A DNA stretch of 64,000 nt, taken from positions 4,960,001 to 5,024,000 of the forward strand of contig OZ059899.1 in NCBI GenBank assembly GCA_964057225.1, in the 5' to 3' direction. Source of the stretch: Auanema rhodensis. Taxonomy: Eukaryota > Animalia > Nematoda. The notes below the pieces were generated by a model, which saw nothing but the letters and a program-made list of their open reading frames with translations, was not told the origin of the DNA and made no database searches. Position numbers and translations under genes: made by a program. This document shows, piece by piece, positions 3,684 to 53,345 of the stretch; the first letter of the stretch is position 1, and each line of letters starts with the position of its first letter.

Positions 3684-3755
3684 GGGCCGAGCCGGGGATC
3701 GATCCCGGGACCTCTCGCACCCTAAGCGAGAATCATACCACTAGACCACTCGGCC
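3684..3755 (-). tRNA. tRNA-Pro (AGG)
   Basis: Minus strand reads GGCCGAGTGGTCTAGTGGTATGATTCTCGCTTAGGGTGCGAGAGGTCCCGGGATCGATCCCCGGCTCGGCCC: 72-nt cloverleaf with anticodon loop TTAGGGT. Confidence 0.95.
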
Positions 3756-29588: not shown

Positions 29589-30489
29589 ACTAGTAGCAAA
29601 TTCGAATAAACCTTGTCACTAAAATGACTTAAAAGTAGTTGGCTTGTTGAAGATGAATCACAAGCCTGATTCATATTCAAGGTAATGTGTTATGCTTAAT
29701 TCAGCTATGTATGATTCAAAGAAATTCATGTTTCTTTTCTTTTCTTTTTTTTAAAATCTTATAAAGAAATTAAGAGAAAACAATTTTATAAATCCTATTC
29801 ATCAACCAACAGTTTTAAATAATGTGTAATTGACTTTATTCGAAAAAAAAACTTTTTTGTATTTAATTTCTTTTTTTTATATTTCTACTTCTATGAGTAA
29901 GAATTCTGAATCATTTACGGCAACAAAAGATGTTACTGTGCCTTTCATTCTGCTAATTCTTTGGCTAGCAATAGCTCTTCTTCTCATTCTCAACGAAAAA
30001 TTCCATCAAATTCCCAAATTCTCATATAGTTTTCCCTCACAATTCTTAGTTTTTAGTAAAAATTTCTTTTAGTAGATATTAGAAAATGGACACATGATTA
30101 ATCTGTAGCAGATCACTCCTATCCCCAAGTGGTATTACCTGTAGCATACTACCCGTAGCAGCTAATCAGATAGACCAACTTGAATATTATAAACATATAC
30201 ATAGATTATATGAATTAATTCTCTTTTTTTTACGTTTTTCATAATTCTTAGACAAATTAATTATTATTTTAATATATTTAAATACTTCAAACATGTTTAG
30301 ACATCATCAATTATTTCGTAACCAGTCTTCTTCACTGAAAAGAAAAGAAAAAAAACTGGATAGATGCTTGTATTTATTATATATTTACATCTATAGTATA
30401 TATAATATCTATGATTCATGTGAATATTCTTAAAACATTGTAATATGGCTTTCAATTCTTTATTGATTTTCACATTTAACTTTCGATGT

Positions 30490-31591
30490 TTAATATCCTG
30501 GAGCCAAGCGTGCTGGAGGACAGTGATCACAAGATCCAGGTGCTCCGTTATCTCCATCTGGTCCATTTGGTCCAGCAGGTCCGTTTGGTCCTGGTTGTCC
30601 TGGACTTCCTGGCAATCCGGGTGGACCGGATTGACCGCTTTTCCCGTCGTTTCCTGGATTTCCTGGTGGTCCTGGTGGTCCTGGTGGTCCTGGTCTTCCT
30701 GGTGATCCTGGTCTTCCTGGTGGTCCCATTTCAGTGCGGTAACTTCCAGGTTCTCCTGGTGGGCCTGGTCTTCCCATTTGTCCAGGTTGTCCTGGCATAC
30801 CAGGTGGTCCTCTTTCTCCTTGATCTCCTGGTTTTCCATCATCTCCTGAAACTCCTGGAGCTCCTGGTGGACCGTCTGGTCCAGGAGCACCCTTTGGTCC
30901 CGGCTCTCCTGGTGGAGCTTCACATGGACATTGTTCTGGGAAGAGCGATTGTGGATCAGGTCCGGGAGGAGCTGGTGGTCCTGGCTGTCCAATATCTCCA
31001 GTGTTTCCATCAACTCCATCTACACCGTCACGTCCGGGTTCTCCAGCTGGTCCTGGTGGTCCACGGTGGCATGTACAACAGCCTCCACCAACTTGAGGAG
31101 CTTCACTTCCTCCTGCTCCATGCTCTACAAAAGCGGAAGGTCCGTCATAACCAACGGGCTCGTCTCTGAGTTCTTGATCGTGAAGACGGCGAGCCCAGAA
31201 GTCGGCCAACGTATCTCTGAAGAAATCACAGAATTTGAAAGAAGATACGAATTTATTGGAAACCTTTTAGCTATACGACGTTGAGCCATGACAATGCTCG
31301 CAAGCCGAGCAACATCACGTCTACCACCAGTTTCAATGTCCAGCATTTCTTTCCACATATCACGAGCTCTGGCCTAAAAATTGAAGGTTTCAACGTTTTT
31401 TATATTTCAATAATGATAGTAACCTGACAATATTCGATATCTAATTGAACTTGAGATTCAAGTGTCTGAACATAGTGTAGAATAAGGGGAAATGTTAACA
31501 GACAACTAGTCAGAGCAACTGTGGAAAATACAACAGCGGCAAATGCTACTGGTCGTAATGAACGACGTGAGTCGTCCTTTTCGTCAGACAT
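30490..31591 (-). CDS. Nematode cuticle collagen
   Basis: N-terminal cuticle-collagen domain with TM segment ([28 protein letters not shown]); furin-like RIAKR; Cys clusters CCTC, QCPC and [13 protein letters not shown]; interrupted Gly-X-Y blocks; two short introns. Confidence 0.95.
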
Positions 31592-32253
31592 CTGAAAATC
31601 CAAATACTTGATAAAAATTGTAAATAATTGGAAGAAATACGTGATTTATAGAACAAAAATGGATTTTGAAACTTAATACGTAGTTTAAAGGCTAAAATAT
31701 TCATTCAAATATTAGAAAAACTATAGATGATACAAACACAGGAAAGTAGAAACACTAGCGAAGAAACAACGCAATAGAACAAAAATAAAACGACCAAATA
31801 CTAAGAGACAACCTCAATATGGAAGTTTAACAGAAGAAAAAGAAGACTAGTAGAAGAAGAAGAAGCATCGTCACACTATGCCGACCAACAGCCTATATAT
31901 CCTACTCAGCTAGGCCTCGCCACTCTCTAGAATCCATCTACTCACTACCGTTCCACCGTCGTGTACAGTTCGCCTAAATCTCTGCGCGCTCTTTCTCTTC
32001 CATTATCCTTCAAATCAAGACAATTTGAAACGGCTGCATGTACAAAGCAAGGCGAAGTATTCCGCCGCCCAGTGGAAGTCATCAAAGTTGATCATCAGGA
32101 AAGCTAGGTTTTTTACATAAGATGTGACACACCAGCATTATCATGTGTCCGTTTATTTTCATTTCAAGCGTTGATGCAGAGTTAAAAATCGTGTTTAACA
32201 ACAGGGTGTTTTAAAATCCAATATTTTCATTATATTTGAGTCATGAAATTGTA

Positions 32254-33438
32254 AAATCTTTATTTACAAAACAGAAACGACAACAATAAAACAACAATAA
32301 AATAAGATCTAAGTCTATTTCTGAAGTCTAAGAAAATATTATAAAATTATGAAGTTCGGAGCATCTTAGCTGCCTTCTTATCAGCCAAATCCTTCAGTTG
32401 CTGTGCAACAGTTTCTCTTCGTTCATTCAAAAAATTCTGAAACATTCTAAATTTTAGAAAATTGAACTACTTGAAAAAATTACCTGAAGTTCAGTCGGAT
32501 CAATATCCTCTCGCTGTACTTGAATACCAATACAACGACAAGATTTTATGAGTTGCTTACATATTTCCTGCACAAATATAGATAAAATAAAACATCTCAT
32601 TAAAAAAATGTTTTACCTGTAAAGGTACACCCTGTAAAGCTTTATCTCGCGCTTTAACCAATGCTATTTCATAAATATGCTTCACCGAAAGCTTTCCTGA
32701 TATTTCACCTGGAATGCATAATAGAATTTAGTTGAGAAATAGAAGTCAAACCTGGATTTTGCCGACCCCGTGAAATACCAGCAGCTTTTTTTAAAAGCCA
32801 CGATGAAGACGGTGTACATATTTCTAAATCATAAGTCCTATCAGGTTTTACAACAATACGTGTGGGCAGTACAGCACCTGGAACAGAAAACTTAATGGGA
32901 TTATACTATAGTTAGTTTAGCAGGGAATTTAAAATATACTACCTGGATGAATATGTCCAGTTTCCTTATTAAATTCCTTGCAAAAATTAGCAACATTTAT
33001 TCCTCTTTGACCTAATTGAGGACCAAGAGGTGGGGCAGCAGAAGCCATCTGAGCTCTAAATGCCTAATTTATAGAAAACCTAATTATTACTATATTTCAC
33101 TACTTGATATTAGTTTTAAGCAGAGCTCCATGTATAACCTTAACCACTTCCTTCTTTCTTACACGGGCAGCAGCTTTTGAGGCCATATCTAGTATAACAA
33201 ATCATAATATTTCATATAAAGAATAAAAGAACTACAAGCTACACTTATATAAATTAAAACTCGTAAAGCTATCAGTACATATATCAAGACTAGAATTCAG
33301 ACAGCATCAAAATTAACAAATATGAAAAGTATTATATAATTGTGTGAAAACGTGCTCCCAAGACTTATACGTAATACTGCGTTAGTTCTCTTCGTAATCA
33401 GATTTCACGGACTAGAGACTCAACTTCTAATACTCAAA
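32254..33438 (-). repeat. Left arm of a 1185-bp inverted duplication (whole mrpl-11 gene plus 5' flank)
   Basis: Reverse complement of 34441-35625; no mismatches seen in spot checks of exons, introns and flanks. Confidence 0.95.
32347..33186 (-). CDS. mrpl-11: Mitochondrial ribosomal protein L11 (uL11m), copy 1
   Basis: [20 protein letters not shown]...[32 protein letters not shown]...[13 protein letters not shown]...[10 protein letters not shown]; intact spliced ORF. Confidence 0.93.
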
Positions 33439-33475
33439 CCTATGTCAGCCTATCAAATCAAAAGTAGGCATAAAC

Positions 33476-33540
33476 CTGCATGCTAATTAGTTCAGCGTGA
33501 AATTTACGCTTGCAACCTCTTGCGCAAGTTTTATTTAAAA
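33476..33540 (+). promoter_or_regulatory. Conserved upstream block shared by X1 and X2 (second copy at 35694-35758)
   Basis: ATGCTAATTAGTTCAGCGTGAAA.TTACGCTT.CAACCT..TGCGCAAGTTTTATTTAAAA lies directly before both start codons; it includes a TATA-like TATTTAAA and a small AGCGT..ACGCT inverted repeat. Confidence 0.6.
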
Positions 33541-33546
33541 GCGAAC

Positions 33547-34293
33547 ATGCGTAGTATTTGGTTGGTGATTAGCATTTTCTTAACGTTCACAGCTGTGGAA
33601 TCGAGAAATTATCCAATTTTTACTACCAAAATTGACATTCCACGCTTCGCTTGGGTTAATTTATTTCTTATAGATGCCTATTAAAATTGTTTTCAGACCC
33701 CAAAGAACTATTTTAGTACAGAATATTTCCCAGAAGGAATAACTGACAATTTTGATCAACAAATTAATGAGTATTGTGATAATGTGAGATTGATCCTTCG
33801 ATGTTTAACAGATATATTCCCTTTAGCCAGTTTTAACAGATAGTTATTTGGAATTCGTAGCCGATGCACAAAGTAGAATAAATAAATATAATGGAACAAT
33901 TCATGATAGACCCTTAAACATTCCAAAATTACGTCATATTTTTAGAATGGTTTAGAATTTTAAGTATTGAAACGCTTCTTTTAAATTTTATATTAGGTAT
34001 GTCGGATGGTATATTCACGTTCTGATGTGAACAACGATGGTCTTTTAAATGTTGATGAAACTAAGCAAGGATCGGAAATCGTGATGACTTGGTTGAATTC
34101 GATTGCAACAAAAATTAATTTGAATGCGGTTTCCTTGAACACTATGTTGAAACTATTTATCAATATACCGTTCGCAAACATGGAAGAAACCACAGTGAGT
34201 ATAAAAATTGAAATCTTAATATCAAAATTTATTTAGAATAATTTCAATACAAAATTTGAACATTTAGTAACAGAAGTCAATGAAAATCAATGA
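33547..34293 (+). CDS. Small secreted protein with one EF-hand-like loop, paralog X1 (family not recognised)
   Basis: Five exons in frame; signal peptide MRSIWLVISIFLTFTAVES; EF-hand-like loop SDVNNDGLLNVDE; same exon structure as 35765-36571. Confidence 0.8.
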
Positions 34294-34440
34294 ATTTTAA
34301 AAATTAAATTAATTAAACAAATTTTAACCTGTGTACAGATTGCTTGAATAAAGACAACATTATTAGAAACCTAATCGCAATTCTGATCTGATCTTAGGCA
34401 AAGTAATAGCATTCGATATTAAATTTTTTTAAGACGAGGT

Positions 34441-35625
34441 TTTGAGTATTAGAAGTTGAGTCTCTAGTCCGTGAAATCTGATTACGAAGAGAACTAACGC
34501 AGTATTACGTATAAGTCTTGGGAGCACGTTTTCACACAATTATATAATACTTTTCATATTTGTTAATTTTGATGCTGTCTGAATTCTAGTCTTGATATAT
34601 GTACTGATAGCTTTACGAGTTTTAATTTATATAAGTGTAGCTTGTAGTTCTTTTATTCTTTATATGAAATATTATGATTTGTTATACTAGATATGGCCTC
34701 AAAAGCTGCTGCCCGTGTAAGAAAGAAGGAAGTGGTTAAGGTTATACATGGAGCTCTGCTTAAAACTAATATCAAGTAGTGAAATATAGTAATAATTAGG
34801 TTTTCTATAAATTAGGCATTTAGAGCTCAGATGGCTTCTGCTGCCCCACCTCTTGGTCCTCAATTAGGTCAAAGAGGAATAAATGTTGCTAATTTTTGCA
34901 AGGAATTTAATAAGGAAACTGGACATATTCATCCAGGTAGTATATTTTAAATTCCCTGCTAAACTAACTATAGTATAATCCCATTAAGTTTTCTGTTCCA
35001 GGTGCTGTACTGCCCACACGTATTGTTGTAAAACCTGATAGGACTTATGATTTAGAAATATGTACACCGTCTTCATCGTGGCTTTTAAAAAAAGCTGCTG
35101 GTATTTCACGGGGTCGGCAAAATCCAGGTTTGACTTCTATTTCTCAACTAAATTCTATTATGCATTCCAGGTGAAATATCAGGAAAGCTTTCGGTGAAGC
35201 ATATTTATGAAATAGCATTGGTTAAAGCGCGAGATAAAGCTTTACAGGGTGTACCTTTACAGGTAAAACATTTTTTTAATGAGATGTTTTATTTTATCTA
35301 TATTTGTGCAGGAAATATGTAAGCAACTCATAAAATCTTGTCGTTGTATTGGTATTCAAGTACAGCGAGAGGATATTGATCCGACTGAACTTCAGGTAAT
35401 TTTTTCAAGTAGTTCAATTTTCTAAAATTTAGAATGTTTCAGAATTTTTTGAATGAACGAAGAGAAACTGTTGCACAGCAACTGAAGGATTTGGCTGATA
35501 AGAAGGCAGCTAAGATGCTCCGAACTTCATAATTTTATAATATTTTCTTAGACTTCAGAAATAGACTTAGATCTTATTTTATTGTTGTTTTATTGTTGTC
35601 GTTTCTGTTTTGTAAATAAAGATTT
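34441..35625 (+). repeat. Right arm of the 1185-bp inverted duplication
   Basis: Exact reverse complement of 32254-33438 in spot checks; ends 5 nt after AATAAA (35615-35620). Confidence 0.95.
34693..35532 (+). CDS. mrpl-11: Mitochondrial ribosomal protein L11 (uL11m), copy 2
   Basis: Same spliced ORF as copy 1, on the opposite strand. Confidence 0.93.
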
Positions 35626-35764
35626 CATAAATGTTTTACTTCCATCCTATATTCTTCTAATATTTTTCTCGGATCGAGAATAAGTGAATGATGCTGTATG
35701 CTAATTAGTTCAGCGTGAAAGTTACGCTTTCAACCTGCTGCGCAAGTTTTATTTAAAAAAGAGA

Positions 35765-36571
35765 ATGCACAGCATTCAGTTGGTGGTTAGCATTCTCTTT
35801 GCTTTTGCTGCTGTCAATTCAAAAGCTGATGAAGTTGATTCTTTTTATGCTAGAATTCCACGAGTAGCTTGGGTTATTTGTTTTTCAAAGTGTTAAATTC
35901 CTATTAAAATTATTTTCAGACTCCAAAGAATAATTTTGGTACAGCATATTTCTTGGAAAAGAAATTAGACTTTTTTGATCAACAAATTAATGAGTATTGT
36001 GATAATGTGAGCTTGTTTCCTGATCTATGCTTAACCAACAAACTTTGTTTTAGCCTGCACTAACAGATACCGAATTAGAGTTTCTTTCTGATGCTCAACA
36101 TTTCATGATAAGTAGCACATATGTTCTAAATATATTCCAACCTGATTTTTCATTGCACACTCAAAAACTGAACGAAATTCACAAAATGGTTTAGAATTTT
36201 AAGTATTGAAACGCTTCTTTTAAATTTTATATTAGGTATGTCGAATGGTATATTCACGTTCTGATACAAACAACGATGGCGTTTTGAGTGAGATGGAAGC
36301 TCGTAGAGCAAAAAACACAACCTTGTCTTGGTTAATGATTATCGTATCAAAGATTTATGTTCATGTTGCTCCTCTTAAACAAGTTTTCAAAGCATTAACT
36401 CTTATACCGTTCAAGACATCAAGTGAAGTACCGGTAAGGCAAACTTAAAATTTGTTTTTGTATAAGACAAATGTTTAGATAGAATTATCTAATATTATGG
36501 AAAATTTGGGTGGAGGATTAGAAAAATTAGATTTCCTAATTCGTGGTCCTCTCAAAATGGAATCGAAGTAA
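35765..36571 (+). CDS. Small secreted protein with one EF-hand-like loop, paralog X2
   Basis: Signal peptide MHSIQLVVSILFAFAAVNS; IPRVAW|TPKN..., FDQQINEYCDN, VCRMVYSRSDTNNDGVLSEME; same intron positions as X1. Confidence 0.8.
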
Positions 36572-37097: not shown

Positions 37098-38595
37098 ATG
37101 AAAGATGCTGCCATAAAAGAAAATATGTTGGAAAGTAAAACATCTCTTAAAGAAATCCGTTCATCATATTCATGTTGCATACGACGCTTACATCGATCAA
37201 CTTGTAGTTTTATATTAATTGGAATTATATTCATAATATTATTTACTATACAATCAAATAATCTGACTGATCAAATAACAACATTAAGAAATGCTTTTGG
37301 ATCATATAATATTGAAAATGAATATACACCTTATCAGAATACAACTGAAGTTTCTCCATATACTTTACAAGTTCGACAAAATATTCATTATTATTTAAAT
37401 GATACAAGTATGATTAGAAATATTATTATTTTCTTATTTTATATTTCAAATTCTTTATTTTAGAAGCTTTATTAGATTCATTTCATCCTTTTAATAATGG
37501 AACAAATAACTATACTATTACTGTAACTAATAATTATACAGTATGTTCATTTTAATTTTTTAATTCAAAAATCATTTTCTGTTTTAGATTGTACCTAACT
37601 TTCATGTAGCTTATTGTCCAATATCAGAAGCATTATCTACTACTCTTAACAATATTTTTTGTTATTTATTTGATAGTGATGGATTTGTACAAGATGGTAG
37701 CGATATTATAATGAATTATGATCAGCCACCGTTAGTTTTTAAATTTCAAAAACAATATTCCCATGAATTCATATATTTTTTCAAATATTTTCGGTACACT
37801 AATGAAATCTTTTTCCAGATTTTGTGATGTACGTAATCAAGTAGGAACAATTGAAGATTTAAATCGTATAATGCCATTCACATTTAACACTTTAACGGTA
37901 ATTCGTGATCCAATTTACCGTTTTGTTAGTGCATTTATACGTTATTGTATAAAGTATGAATACAAAATAATATTTCAAATTTAAAATATTTTTAATTTCA
38001 GAAATAAAGAAAAAACAAATGGAAAAGATAATTGGAATGAAATTTGTTATTACTGTGAAGAATCAGATTTAATATGTGTTATAGAGAGACTTTATAAAAA
38101 TGTTGCAAATCTTGATACATTCTGGCAAAATCGTTTAACTATCAAATATGTTTTCAATATTTGGGCTCCTCAAAGTTGGTAAGTTTGTATTATATTTATA
38201 TTAAAAGTTTATTAATTAGGAATTGTGCAATGAGTTTTACTTATTCGGATTTAACATTTGTCCGATATGGTGAGGATGGTGAAGAACGAGAAAGAATGTT
38301 ATTTGATATAATGACGGAACTAGAACGTTTTAAAGTACCCGAAGAATATTTATCATATATTCAAGAAAGAATAAATGGTTAGTTTTAATTATTAAAACTT
38401 TAATTTTTATAATCTGTAATTTATTTTATAGTTGGAATGCATACAATGACTAGTCTACGTTCACAACCTGAAGCTAAGAAAGTTTTACAACAATTGAAAT
38501 CAAACTCTACACTTTTTGATATTTTAACAGCAATTTATCGTTATGATTTTAAAATTTTTGCTTTTGAAAAACCTGACCGTAACAAGTTAATATGA
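37098..38595 (+). CDS. Type II membrane Sulfotransfer_2 (carbohydrate sulfotransferase-like) protein
   Basis: N-terminal TM (FILIGIIFIILFTI); YCPISEALSTTLNNIFCYL (5'-PSB region); VIRDPIYRFVSAF (3'-PB motif); WAPQSWNC; C-terminal IYRYDFKIFAFEKP. Confidence 0.85.
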
Positions 38596-51207: not shown

Positions 51208-51281
51208 TGCCGCCAGCAGGGGTCGAACCTGCGACCTTGGGCTTATTAGACCCACGCTCTAACCGACTGAGCTATGGCGGC
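51208..51281 (-). tRNA. tRNA-Ile (AAT)
   Basis: Minus strand reads GCCGCCATAGCTCAGTCGGTTAGAGCGTGGGTCTAATAAGCCCAAGGTCGCAGGTTCGACCCCTGCTGGCGGCA; anticodon loop CTAATAA. Confidence 0.96.
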
Positions 51282-52412: not shown

Positions 52413-53345
52413 ATGATCTTTGTCAAGACCCTAACGGGTCAAACATTGACCCTCGAATCTACCACTGTAGGTAGCATCAAGCAGAAGATCCAAGAGATCG
52501 AAGGTATCGCTGCTGAAGACCAACGTCTTTCCTTCGAAGGTGAGTGAATTTTGAGGTTTTTTGCTGACTCTCGAGAGGTTTTCCCCGAACCTTGAGGACA
52601 GACTTGGCTTTCCCCAAGAATGACCCGTCTTCACTACAGGACGTCAGCTCTCCGATGAACTCGATGTTGCCGAGGCCTCAACCCTCCACCTCTCTCTCAG
52701 GTTTGTGAAATAACGATACAGAGAATTCTATGATGGCGATGATGAATATTTTTTTTCTGGTGTCCAGGCCTCTGAGAGTTCCATGACTGATTTTTTGAGT
52801 TCCTGAGCTATAACATAGAATTCTCACATTATTTATTGTTCTGTTGGAGAAAACATTTAAAACCATTTGTTACAGACTTTTGGGAGGAGGAAAGAAGAGA
52901 AAGAAGAAGGTTTACACCACCCCAAAGAAGATCAAGCATAAGAGAAAGAAGGTCAAACTCGCTGTCCTCAAGTACTACGAGGTTAGTTCTAAATAGGTTA
53001 CACTTCTGAAAAGAAAGACCGGCGATGATGAACATTTTTTTTCTGGTGTCCAGGCCTCTGAGAGTTCCATGACTGATTTTTTGAGTTCCTGAGCCGTGTT
53101 TTTCTTATTTAGAATCTTAATTAATAATTTTGTTCCGAAAATTACAAGGATTTTTATAGGTTGATGGCAGTGGAAAGATCCGCCGTTTACGTAAGGAGTG
53201 CCAATCCGCTTCCTGCGGAGGAGGAGTCTTCATGGCTGCCCACGAGAACAGATACTACTGTGGTCGTTGTCACGATACCCTTGTTGTTGAAGAGCCAGTT
53301 GCTGCTGCTGGAGGAGCCAAGAAGGGAGGAAAGGGAAAGAAGTAA
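52413..53345 (+). CDS. ubl-1: Ubiquitin-like / 40S ribosomal protein S27a (eS31) fusion
   Basis: Divergent ubiquitin-like domain [15 protein letters not shown]...[12 protein letters not shown]...[12 protein letters not shown], fused to [30 protein letters not shown]...[19 protein letters not shown]; four exons. Confidence 0.95.
52735..52809 (+). ncRNA. Intronic box C/D snoRNA, SNORD66-like (copy 1, ubl-1 intron 2)
   Basis: C box ATGATGA; guide GGTGTCCAGGCC before D' CTGA; terminal D box CTGA; GGC/GCT terminal stem. Confidence 0.85.
53020..53096 (+). ncRNA. Intronic box C/D snoRNA, SNORD66-like (copy 2, ubl-1 intron 3)
   Basis: Near-identical to copy 1; CGGC/GCCG terminal stem. Confidence 0.85.

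Follow-up and report, generated by a model that had tools for sequence, protein, structure and literature searches.

Two identical inverted mrpl-11 genes in the nematode Auanema rhodensis are best read as a very young gene duplication

How does a housekeeping gene come to stand twice, without a single difference, on both sides of an unrelated gene, and does such an arrangement have a function of its own? The question is raised by a locus of Auanema rhodensis lying about 5 Mb inside a 21.5-Mb contig, within a stretch of 64,000 nucleotides analysed here (the window). In this locus a copy of mrpl-11 on the minus strand is followed on the plus strand by a gene of another kind (X1), a second copy of mrpl-11 and a paralog of X1 (X2). 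This four-gene layout had already been recognized in the first-pass annotation of the DNA, and the gene models and strands agree with it. In our best reading, the cassette is what a very young inverted gene duplication ordinarily leaves behind, and not a DNA switch or an RNA-silencing device.

The left arm (32254-33438, minus strand) carries a complete copy of mrpl-11 (uL11m), with its coding part at 32347-33186 and its 5' flank toward the spacer, and the right arm (34441-35625, plus strand) carries the other complete copy, with an AATAAA signal at 35615-35620. Each arm extends from 252 bp 5' of the ATG through to 5 nt beyond the AATAAA, and the coordinates of the left arm mirror those of the right (left position = 67879 minus right position). 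Between them lies a unique spacer of 1002 bp (33439-34440), which contains X1 and its 108 bp upstream. Letter-by-letter extension gave 1185 bp with 0 mismatches, introns and flanks included, the figure of 1190 nt returned by the repeat search being this arm plus 5 nt of non-matching flank. Inverted arms with these limits had been described around a 1002-bp spacer, and an alignment had been proposed to establish whether they are exactly identical; they are, at 1185 of 1185 bp. The 64-kb window has no other inverted repeat of 80 nt or more, and 264 kb of contiguous sequence no other repeat of at least 200 bp at 90% identity or more, so this is not a chance match. The arm sequence was found at no other place in the 181-Mb assembly. 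High-identity inverted arms, a unique spacer and sharp ends of homology are what defines a gene palindrome or young inverted segmental duplication, and all of them are present here.

The gene in the right arm consists of six GT-AG exons (34693-34740, 34816-34936, 35002-35127, 35171-35262, 35312-35395 and 35443-35532, plus strand) coding for 186 aa. Pfam and protein searches were run exon by exon, the joined models being used for annotation only. Exon 2 matches Ribosomal_L11_N (PF03946) with E=1e-15 and 57.6 bits (cut-off 32.9), while exons 3 and 4, taken singly, match Ribosomal_L11 (PF00298) with E=2.5e-4 and 3e-4 (21.8 and 21.6 bits, cut-off 21.4), covering profile positions 2-22 and 26-47. 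Among solved structures, exons 2 and 3 come closest to mammalian entries named "39S ribosomal protein L11, mitochondrial" (E=3e-9 and 2.5e-8), bacterial L11 ranks lower, and no cytosolic uL11 is found among the solved relatives listed for these exons. Judged by these similarities, the gene in the arms is the mitochondrial paralog uL11m / MRPL11. A genome-wide scan recovered the L11_N domain in both arms (for the left arm at C7:4992938-4993063, minus strand), and an additional L11_N match on contig C4, stronger than these, presumably marks the cytosolic gene. The gene had been described as normally single-copy; searches of the whole genome with DNA, Pfam profiles and exon proteins found two mitochondrial L11 copies in the 181-Mb assembly, one per arm, and no third copy or relic, for example 3' of X2.

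The enclosed gene X1 (33547-34293, plus strand) has five exons, GT-AG introns, every exon in phase 0, and codes for 190 aa with a signal-peptide-like N-terminus. Its paralog X2 (35765-36571, plus strand), just beyond the cassette, has five exons coding for 206 aa and matches it in exon structure and phases. The two proteins share about 40% amino-acid identity and are the only members of their family genome-wide. X1 and X2 are lineage-restricted secreted proteins, the signal peptide being a prediction from the translations. At the start of exon 4 (33997-34194 in X1), both have a canonical 12-residue loop, D-x-N-x-D-G-x-[ILV]-x-x-x-E. EF-hands occur in pairs; one EF-hand-type loop is visible in the X exon translations. 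The label "EF-hand" given to the gene in the first-pass annotation therefore holds for one canonical-looking loop but not for a recognized domain, as exon 4 of X2 reaches 11.2 bits against Pfam EF-hand_1 (E=0.29), below the gathering score of 25.4, and exon 4 of X1 has no Pfam match. A word search for relatives with exon 4 found nothing, and a full HMMER search with an exon 4 profile returned only EF-hand loops of unrelated multi-EF-hand proteins, via positions 5-30. The longest exact match between X1 and X2 is a tract of 59 nt (33946-34004, with its partner at 36185-36243, plus strand), which spans the entire 47-nt intron 3; this intron is identical at 47 of 47 positions, whereas the exons are 50-82% identical. 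No signal of structured RNA was found in the identical intron. X1 and its old paralog X2 are best explained as bystanders of the mrpl-11 duplication.

The limits of the arms inform on how the second copy arose. Flank alignments show that identity falls from 100% to the level of shuffled sequence at all four arm ends, with no leftover homology outside the arms at any of them, and the two spacer ends, compared in the inverted sense, show no homology (score 12, shuffle mean 12.4). The four junctions are each different and unique; microhomology is confined to the inner ends, where a weak 3-nt match, AGG, is shifted by 1 nt. There is no direct repeat indicating a target-site duplication in the 20-nt flanks of the whole cassette or of each arm, and no A-run beyond the arm end. 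The copy includes introns as well as 252 bp of 5' flank and lacks a poly(A) tail, so the event took place at the DNA level, as had been supposed. A retrocopy of pre-mRNA, an idea prompted by the end of the arm 5 nt after AATAAA, was rejected on the same grounds, with five of five introns kept and no target-site duplication.

We consider it probable that the cassette is real and arose very recently at the DNA level, by inverted duplication of one complete mrpl-11 transcription unit, with X1 and X2 as bystanders and with no switch or silencing role. One mrpl-11 unit, starting 252 bp 5' of the ATG and ending 5 nt after the poly(A) signal, would have been copied and set in mirror orientation across the neighbouring gene X1, likely by a replication template switch or a fold-back repair event. 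The outcome would be two intact, identical, outward-pointing mrpl-11 genes and a doubled gene dose, and a flip of the spacer through recombination of the arms would be possible but functionally silent. The identity of the arms is best explained by too little time for mutations to build up. The mutation rate of C. elegans is about 2.7e-9 per site per generation; with a rate of this kind, 0 differences in 1185 bp would place the duplication at less than roughly 5e5 generations ago at 95%, both the reality of the cassette and its age being deduced from one assembly. The sharp arm ends also favour recency, being what would be expected of a single young event rather than of an old, eroding duplicate.

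Such an event has close parallels. In C. elegans, newborn duplicates frequently lie next to each other in inverted orientation, and their median span is 1.4 kb (Katju and Lynch, as reported in PMC2728529). The present arms share with them zero divergence, adjacency, inverted orientation and a span of about one gene (1185 bp here), and inversion seems in both cases to be part of the duplication event. Whereas many of the C. elegans duplicates are partial or chimeric, here, in another species, the copy comprises the complete gene, 5' flank and poly(A) signal included.

The main rival is an older inverted duplicate whose arms have been kept identical by recurrent arm-to-arm gene conversion (concerted evolution), which we regard as rather unlikely. 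Very recent duplication and gene conversion had both been put forward at the outset, and they are the right pair of options. Close inverted arms without any difference are the classic sign of conversion, and conversion tracts in Caenorhabditis reach into introns. X1 and X2 are otherwise diverged, and their 59-nt exact tract may have been produced by conversion, suggesting that conversion may act at this very locus. The nearest precedent is the C. elegans hsp16-1/hsp16-48 locus, in which inverted modules of 1.9 kb, 100% identical, lie 416 bp apart (Russnak and Candido 1985, as described in PMC3966223), and for which the authors, according to the same source, preferred gene conversion. In both cases a nematode has a module of 1-2 kb with genes in it, repeated in inverted orientation at 100% identity, non-coding DNA included, on either side of a short unique spacer. 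However, the hsp16 arms each hold a divergent pair of stress genes around a non-coding spacer, whereas the present arms have one housekeeping gene apiece and the spacer contains a whole unrelated gene; and while conversion was argued there, the sharp edges here favour recency. Old converted duplicates are expected to have eroded edges, and no zone of decayed homology is present at any of the four arm ends; the 0 differences in 1185 bp also speak against conversion.

Sex-chromosome palindromes offer a further comparison for arms maintained by conversion. In the human Y, palindrome arms measure from 10 kb to more than 1 Mb; they contain testis gene families and have been conserved over millions of years with arm-to-arm conversion. 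They resemble the present locus in having near-identical inverted arms with intact genes and a unique spacer, for which an inversion polymorphism is possible. They are set apart by the length of their arms (1185 bp here) and by established testis families and long conservation.

An assembly artefact, with one true mrpl-11 gene and an inverted second copy arising from long reads that were chimeric or folded back, or from an erroneous path through the assembly graph, appears improbable. Fold-back chimeras do occur in long-read data, and a duplicated consensus would give perfect identity. However, the arms of fold-back reads meet almost without a spacer, typically at contig ends, whereas the present arms enclose 1002 bp of unique, gene-bearing DNA, far inside a contig. 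Moreover, the arm limits coincide with those of a complete gene unit, and the surrounding 264 kb hold no other repeat of the size and identity given above. The cassette also requires four distinct junctions, of which a single-copy genome should supply only two; the remaining two would not be explained by a collapsed repeat, nor by a heterozygous inversion joined wrongly. A mis-assembled heterozygous inversion was rejected by logic, as the junction of the X1 3' end to the arm would exist in neither haplotype.

A functional cassette, in which X1 would act as a switch flipped by recombination of the arms, or a transcript of both arms forms a 1.2-kb hairpin that directs RNAi on mrpl-11, or both, is in our view very improbable. 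Inverted repeats can indeed recombine and invert the DNA between them, but here the flip would be symmetric: X1 carries its own 108 bp upstream and meets an identical arm on either side for 1185 bp, so that inversion would be functionally silent. The invertible segment suggested in the first-pass annotation thus loses its force as a mechanism. Site-specific invertible switches combine a recombinase, encoded within the element or next to it, with an inversion whose two outcomes differ, a promoter or gene part lying inside and the target outside; the cassette has no recombinase gene or short crossover site, since only X1 lies in the spacer and only mrpl-11 in the arms.

As for the hairpin, one RNA with both arms would form a perfect stem of 1185 bp, and the ERGO-1/ERI-6/7 siRNA pathway of C. 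elegans prefers recently duplicated genes as targets (PMC3213143); its eri-6/7 targets, however, are poorly conserved genes and not housekeeping ones (PMC3213143). The geometry of the locus is also unfavourable. Both mrpl-11 copies are transcribed outward from the cassette, and transcription from X1 would enter a single arm, the right one, in the sense direction. On the left, a cuticle collagen gene (30300-31603, left end approximate, minus strand; Pfam Collagen E=8.5e-25, Col_cuticle_N E=8.2e-13) and, on the right, a Sulfotransfer_2-like gene recognized from its ORFs (37098-38595, extent approximate, plus strand; Pfam Sulfotransfer_2 E=9e-5 in one exon-sized ORF) are likewise transcribed away from the cassette. 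With the mrpl-11 copies and the outer neighbours all directed outward, no evident promoter would produce one RNA spanning both arms, and the proposed dsRNA hairpin finds little place in this arrangement. In addition, silencing of an essential mitoribosomal gene that has only these two copies should be selected against. The hpRNA loci that yield endo-siRNAs in Drosophila are single transcription units running through both arms (work cited in PMC3213143); they share with the present locus an inverted repeat able in principle to fold into long dsRNA, but here there are two outward-facing genes and no promoter pointing inward.

The description of the locus as "foldback-like" is apt for its shape, long inverted terminal arms around a central segment being also found in Foldback (FB) transposons, but it does not extend to its nature: there is no target-site duplication, no internal subrepeat and no further copy in the 181-Mb genome, and the arms are a host housekeeping gene, so a transposon or foldback element was rejected. 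Finally, a live flip-flop palindrome, in which the X1 spacer occurs both ways round within the population or germline and occasional transcription of both arms gives a 1.2-kb hairpin with siRNAs that tune mitoribosomal dose as a self-limiting duplication, would be barely credible.

C. elegans already provides documented cases of this pattern, to which the locus adds one without raising a new question. In practice it could serve as a test locus, and the mRNAs of the two copies might be separable by 3'-end reads, because the arms stop 5 nt beyond the poly(A) signal. It represents a snapshot of gene duplication at age zero, with a complete housekeeping gene mirrored and all four junctions sharp. 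Such cases shed light on the origin of inverted duplications, through template switching or fold-back repair, and on the tolerance of dosage-sensitive mitoribosomal genes to a doubled dose.

Only one inverted repeat in the window reaches 80 nt; a repeat search places its arms at 32249-33438 and 34441-35630, 1002 nt apart. Letter-by-letter extension gives a perfect stretch of 1185 bp without mismatch (32254-33438 on the minus strand versus 34441-35625 on the plus strand), and the same 1185-bp identity is returned by a DNA search of the whole genome. The coordinates and layout proposed in the first-pass annotation, with two inverted mrpl-11 copies bracketing the small gene X1 and its paralog X2 just outside, are therefore right. 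When the survey is widened to 264 contiguous kb by adding the 200 kb upstream of the window, these arms are still the only repeat that reaches 200 bp and 90% identity.

The right-arm gene has six exons (34693-34740, 34816-34936, 35002-35127, 35171-35262, 35312-35395 and 35443-35532, plus strand) with canonical GT-AG introns and codes for 186 aa; the left coding region (32347-33186, minus strand) is its mirror. Single exons were used as queries, the spliced models serving annotation only. Pfam Ribosomal_L11_N is found in exon 2 (E=1e-15) and the L11 RNA-binding domain in exons 3 and 4, each barely above cut-off; among solved structures, exons 2 and 3 come closest to mammalian mitochondrial uL11m, with bacterial L11 behind. 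These matches justify the name mrpl-11. Each arm includes 252 bp 5' of the ATG and 93 bp 3' of the stop codon, and since the 5' ends face the spacer, both genes are transcribed outward. As read from the sequence, an AATAAA signal lies at 35615-35620 and the duplicated segment stops 5 nt past it (35615-35625, and 32254-32264 in the left arm). The mRNAs are probably cleaved within unique flank, so that the two otherwise identical transcripts could differ in their last few bases.

In the 181-Mb assembly (112 contigs), of which the window is C7:4960001-5024000, whole-genome searches by DNA, by the Pfam L11_N model and by the exon-3 protein all identify two mitochondrial L11 copies, namely the two arms, and none of them finds a third, parental copy or a decayed relic. 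One stronger L11_N match, on contig C4, presumably represents cytosolic uL11. Elsewhere in the window are a cuticle collagen gene directly downstream of the left mrpl-11 on the same strand (30300-31603, minus; Collagen repeats and Col_cuticle_N, an N-terminal domain that marks nematodes), two tandem copies of a C. elegans-type C/D-box snoRNA (52734-52810 and 53020-53096, plus; Rfam ceN106, 60.6 and 65.1 bits, gathering score 60) and two tRNA genes (3684-3755 and 51208-51281, both minus; RF00005).

X1 (33547-34293, plus, 190 aa) and X2 (35765-36571, plus, 206 aa) share a structure of five exons, all of phase 0, and are about 40% identical as proteins; they are the only members of their family in the genome. 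They had been described as paralogous secreted EF-hand genes. The paralogy holds, as do a signal-peptide-like hydrophobic N-terminal stretch, read from the sequence, and a single loop of EF-hand pattern where exon 4 begins (exon 4 is 33997-34194 in X1, 36236-36433 in X2), but Pfam does not confirm an EF-hand, its model reaching 11 bits where 25.4 are needed. A word search with exon 4 among proteins of 36-115 aa gave no match. A profile built from both exon-4 sequences matched 128 of 1.84 billion representative proteins (best E=2e-10), nearly all best matches being confined to positions 3-40 around the loop, with several stretches per protein; all eight matched proteins that were scanned are ordinary multi-EF-hand proteins. 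As this search finds only such loops and no full-length relative, X is, judging from sequence, a secreted protein restricted to its lineage, with a single EF-hand-type loop. The duplication that gave X1 and X2 is old, their exons being 50-82% identical and most introns 58-75%, and so very different in age from that of the fully identical arms. They nevertheless share an exact 59-nt tract (33946-34004 and 36185-36243) covering the whole 47-nt intron 3 and exon edges, without RNA structure signal (z = +1.0), which may stem from conversion of a small patch or from splicing or regulatory constraint. About 70 bp 5' of the start codons also remain similar (33476-33546 and 35694-35764), with an exact 23-mer and 20-mer. 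An A/T-rich TATTTAAAA motif upstream of both genes ends just 6-7 nt short of the ATG, an unusual distance for a TATA box.

Similarity falls to shuffle level immediately past all four arm ends (outer flanks, score 12 versus a shuffle mean of 11.5; inner flanks, 12 versus 12.4). No direct repeat was found around the cassette or either arm, and no A-run after the arm end. The only similarity at the junctions, an AGG of 3 nt shifted by one T at the inner ends, lets BLAST extend to a 1189-nt alignment with one gap and is too weak to count as evidence. With such sharp ends and neither direct repeat nor A-run, the cassette can be no transposon, foldback element or retrocopy. Its features agree with one inverted duplication at the DNA level, which would have been made by replication template switch or fold-back repair.

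We regard a young inverted duplication of mrpl-11 as the probable, if far from certain, origin of the cassette. If mutations arise as in C. elegans, at about 2.7e-9 per site per generation, the absence of differences over 1185 bp would place the separation of the arms less than about 5e5 generations ago (95%), unless they are being homogenised by gene conversion. Conversion between the arms of an older duplicate is the less likely account, since the abrupt arm edges favour youth; a conversion patch in X1 and X2 at this same locus could speak for it. The closest single case is the C. elegans hsp16 inverted repeat, with 1.9-kb modules that are 100% identical and 416 bp apart, whose authors favoured conversion (PMC3966223); this precedent cuts both ways.

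An assembly artefact is quite improbable, although the argument against it is indirect, drawn from assembled sequence. Fold-back read chimeras have a near-zero spacer and usually lie at contig ends, whereas here a 1-kb unique gene separates the arms and the locus lies far from either end of C7, a chromosome-sized contig of 21.47 Mb. Each arm spans precisely one complete gene unit, and the layout needs four different junctions, of which a genome with one copy would offer no more than two. Mis-joining of a heterozygous inversion could not yield the junction at which the X1 3' end meets the mrpl-11 5' flank.

Least probable is the earlier proposal of a functional cassette, in which X1 flips as a switch or a hairpin RNA feeds RNAi. 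Inverted arms of 1.2 kb can recombine and invert the spacer, but X1 would keep its own 108-bp upstream stretch and again face an mrpl-11 5' flank; the context being identical for 1185 bp on either side, a flip switches nothing on or off, and a recombinase is absent since the spacer holds only X1. A hairpin needs one RNA across both arms, yet both mrpl-11 promoters fire outward and transcription from X1 runs into the right arm only as sense strand. With the collagen gene to the left (minus) and X2 and a Sulfotransfer_2-like gene to the right (plus), the cassette sits at a point of strand divergence with no promoter aimed inward. Recent duplicates are targeted by ERGO-1/ERI-6/7 siRNAs in C. elegans, but these targets are poorly conserved genes (PMC3213143), and selection should disfavour silencing an essential mitoribosomal gene in both of its only copies.

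In C. elegans, newly arisen duplicates often lie next to each other in inverted orientation and have a median span of 1.4 kb (PMC2728529). The mrpl-11 cassette matches this documented nematode pattern, of which it is a real, tidy and ordinary instance.
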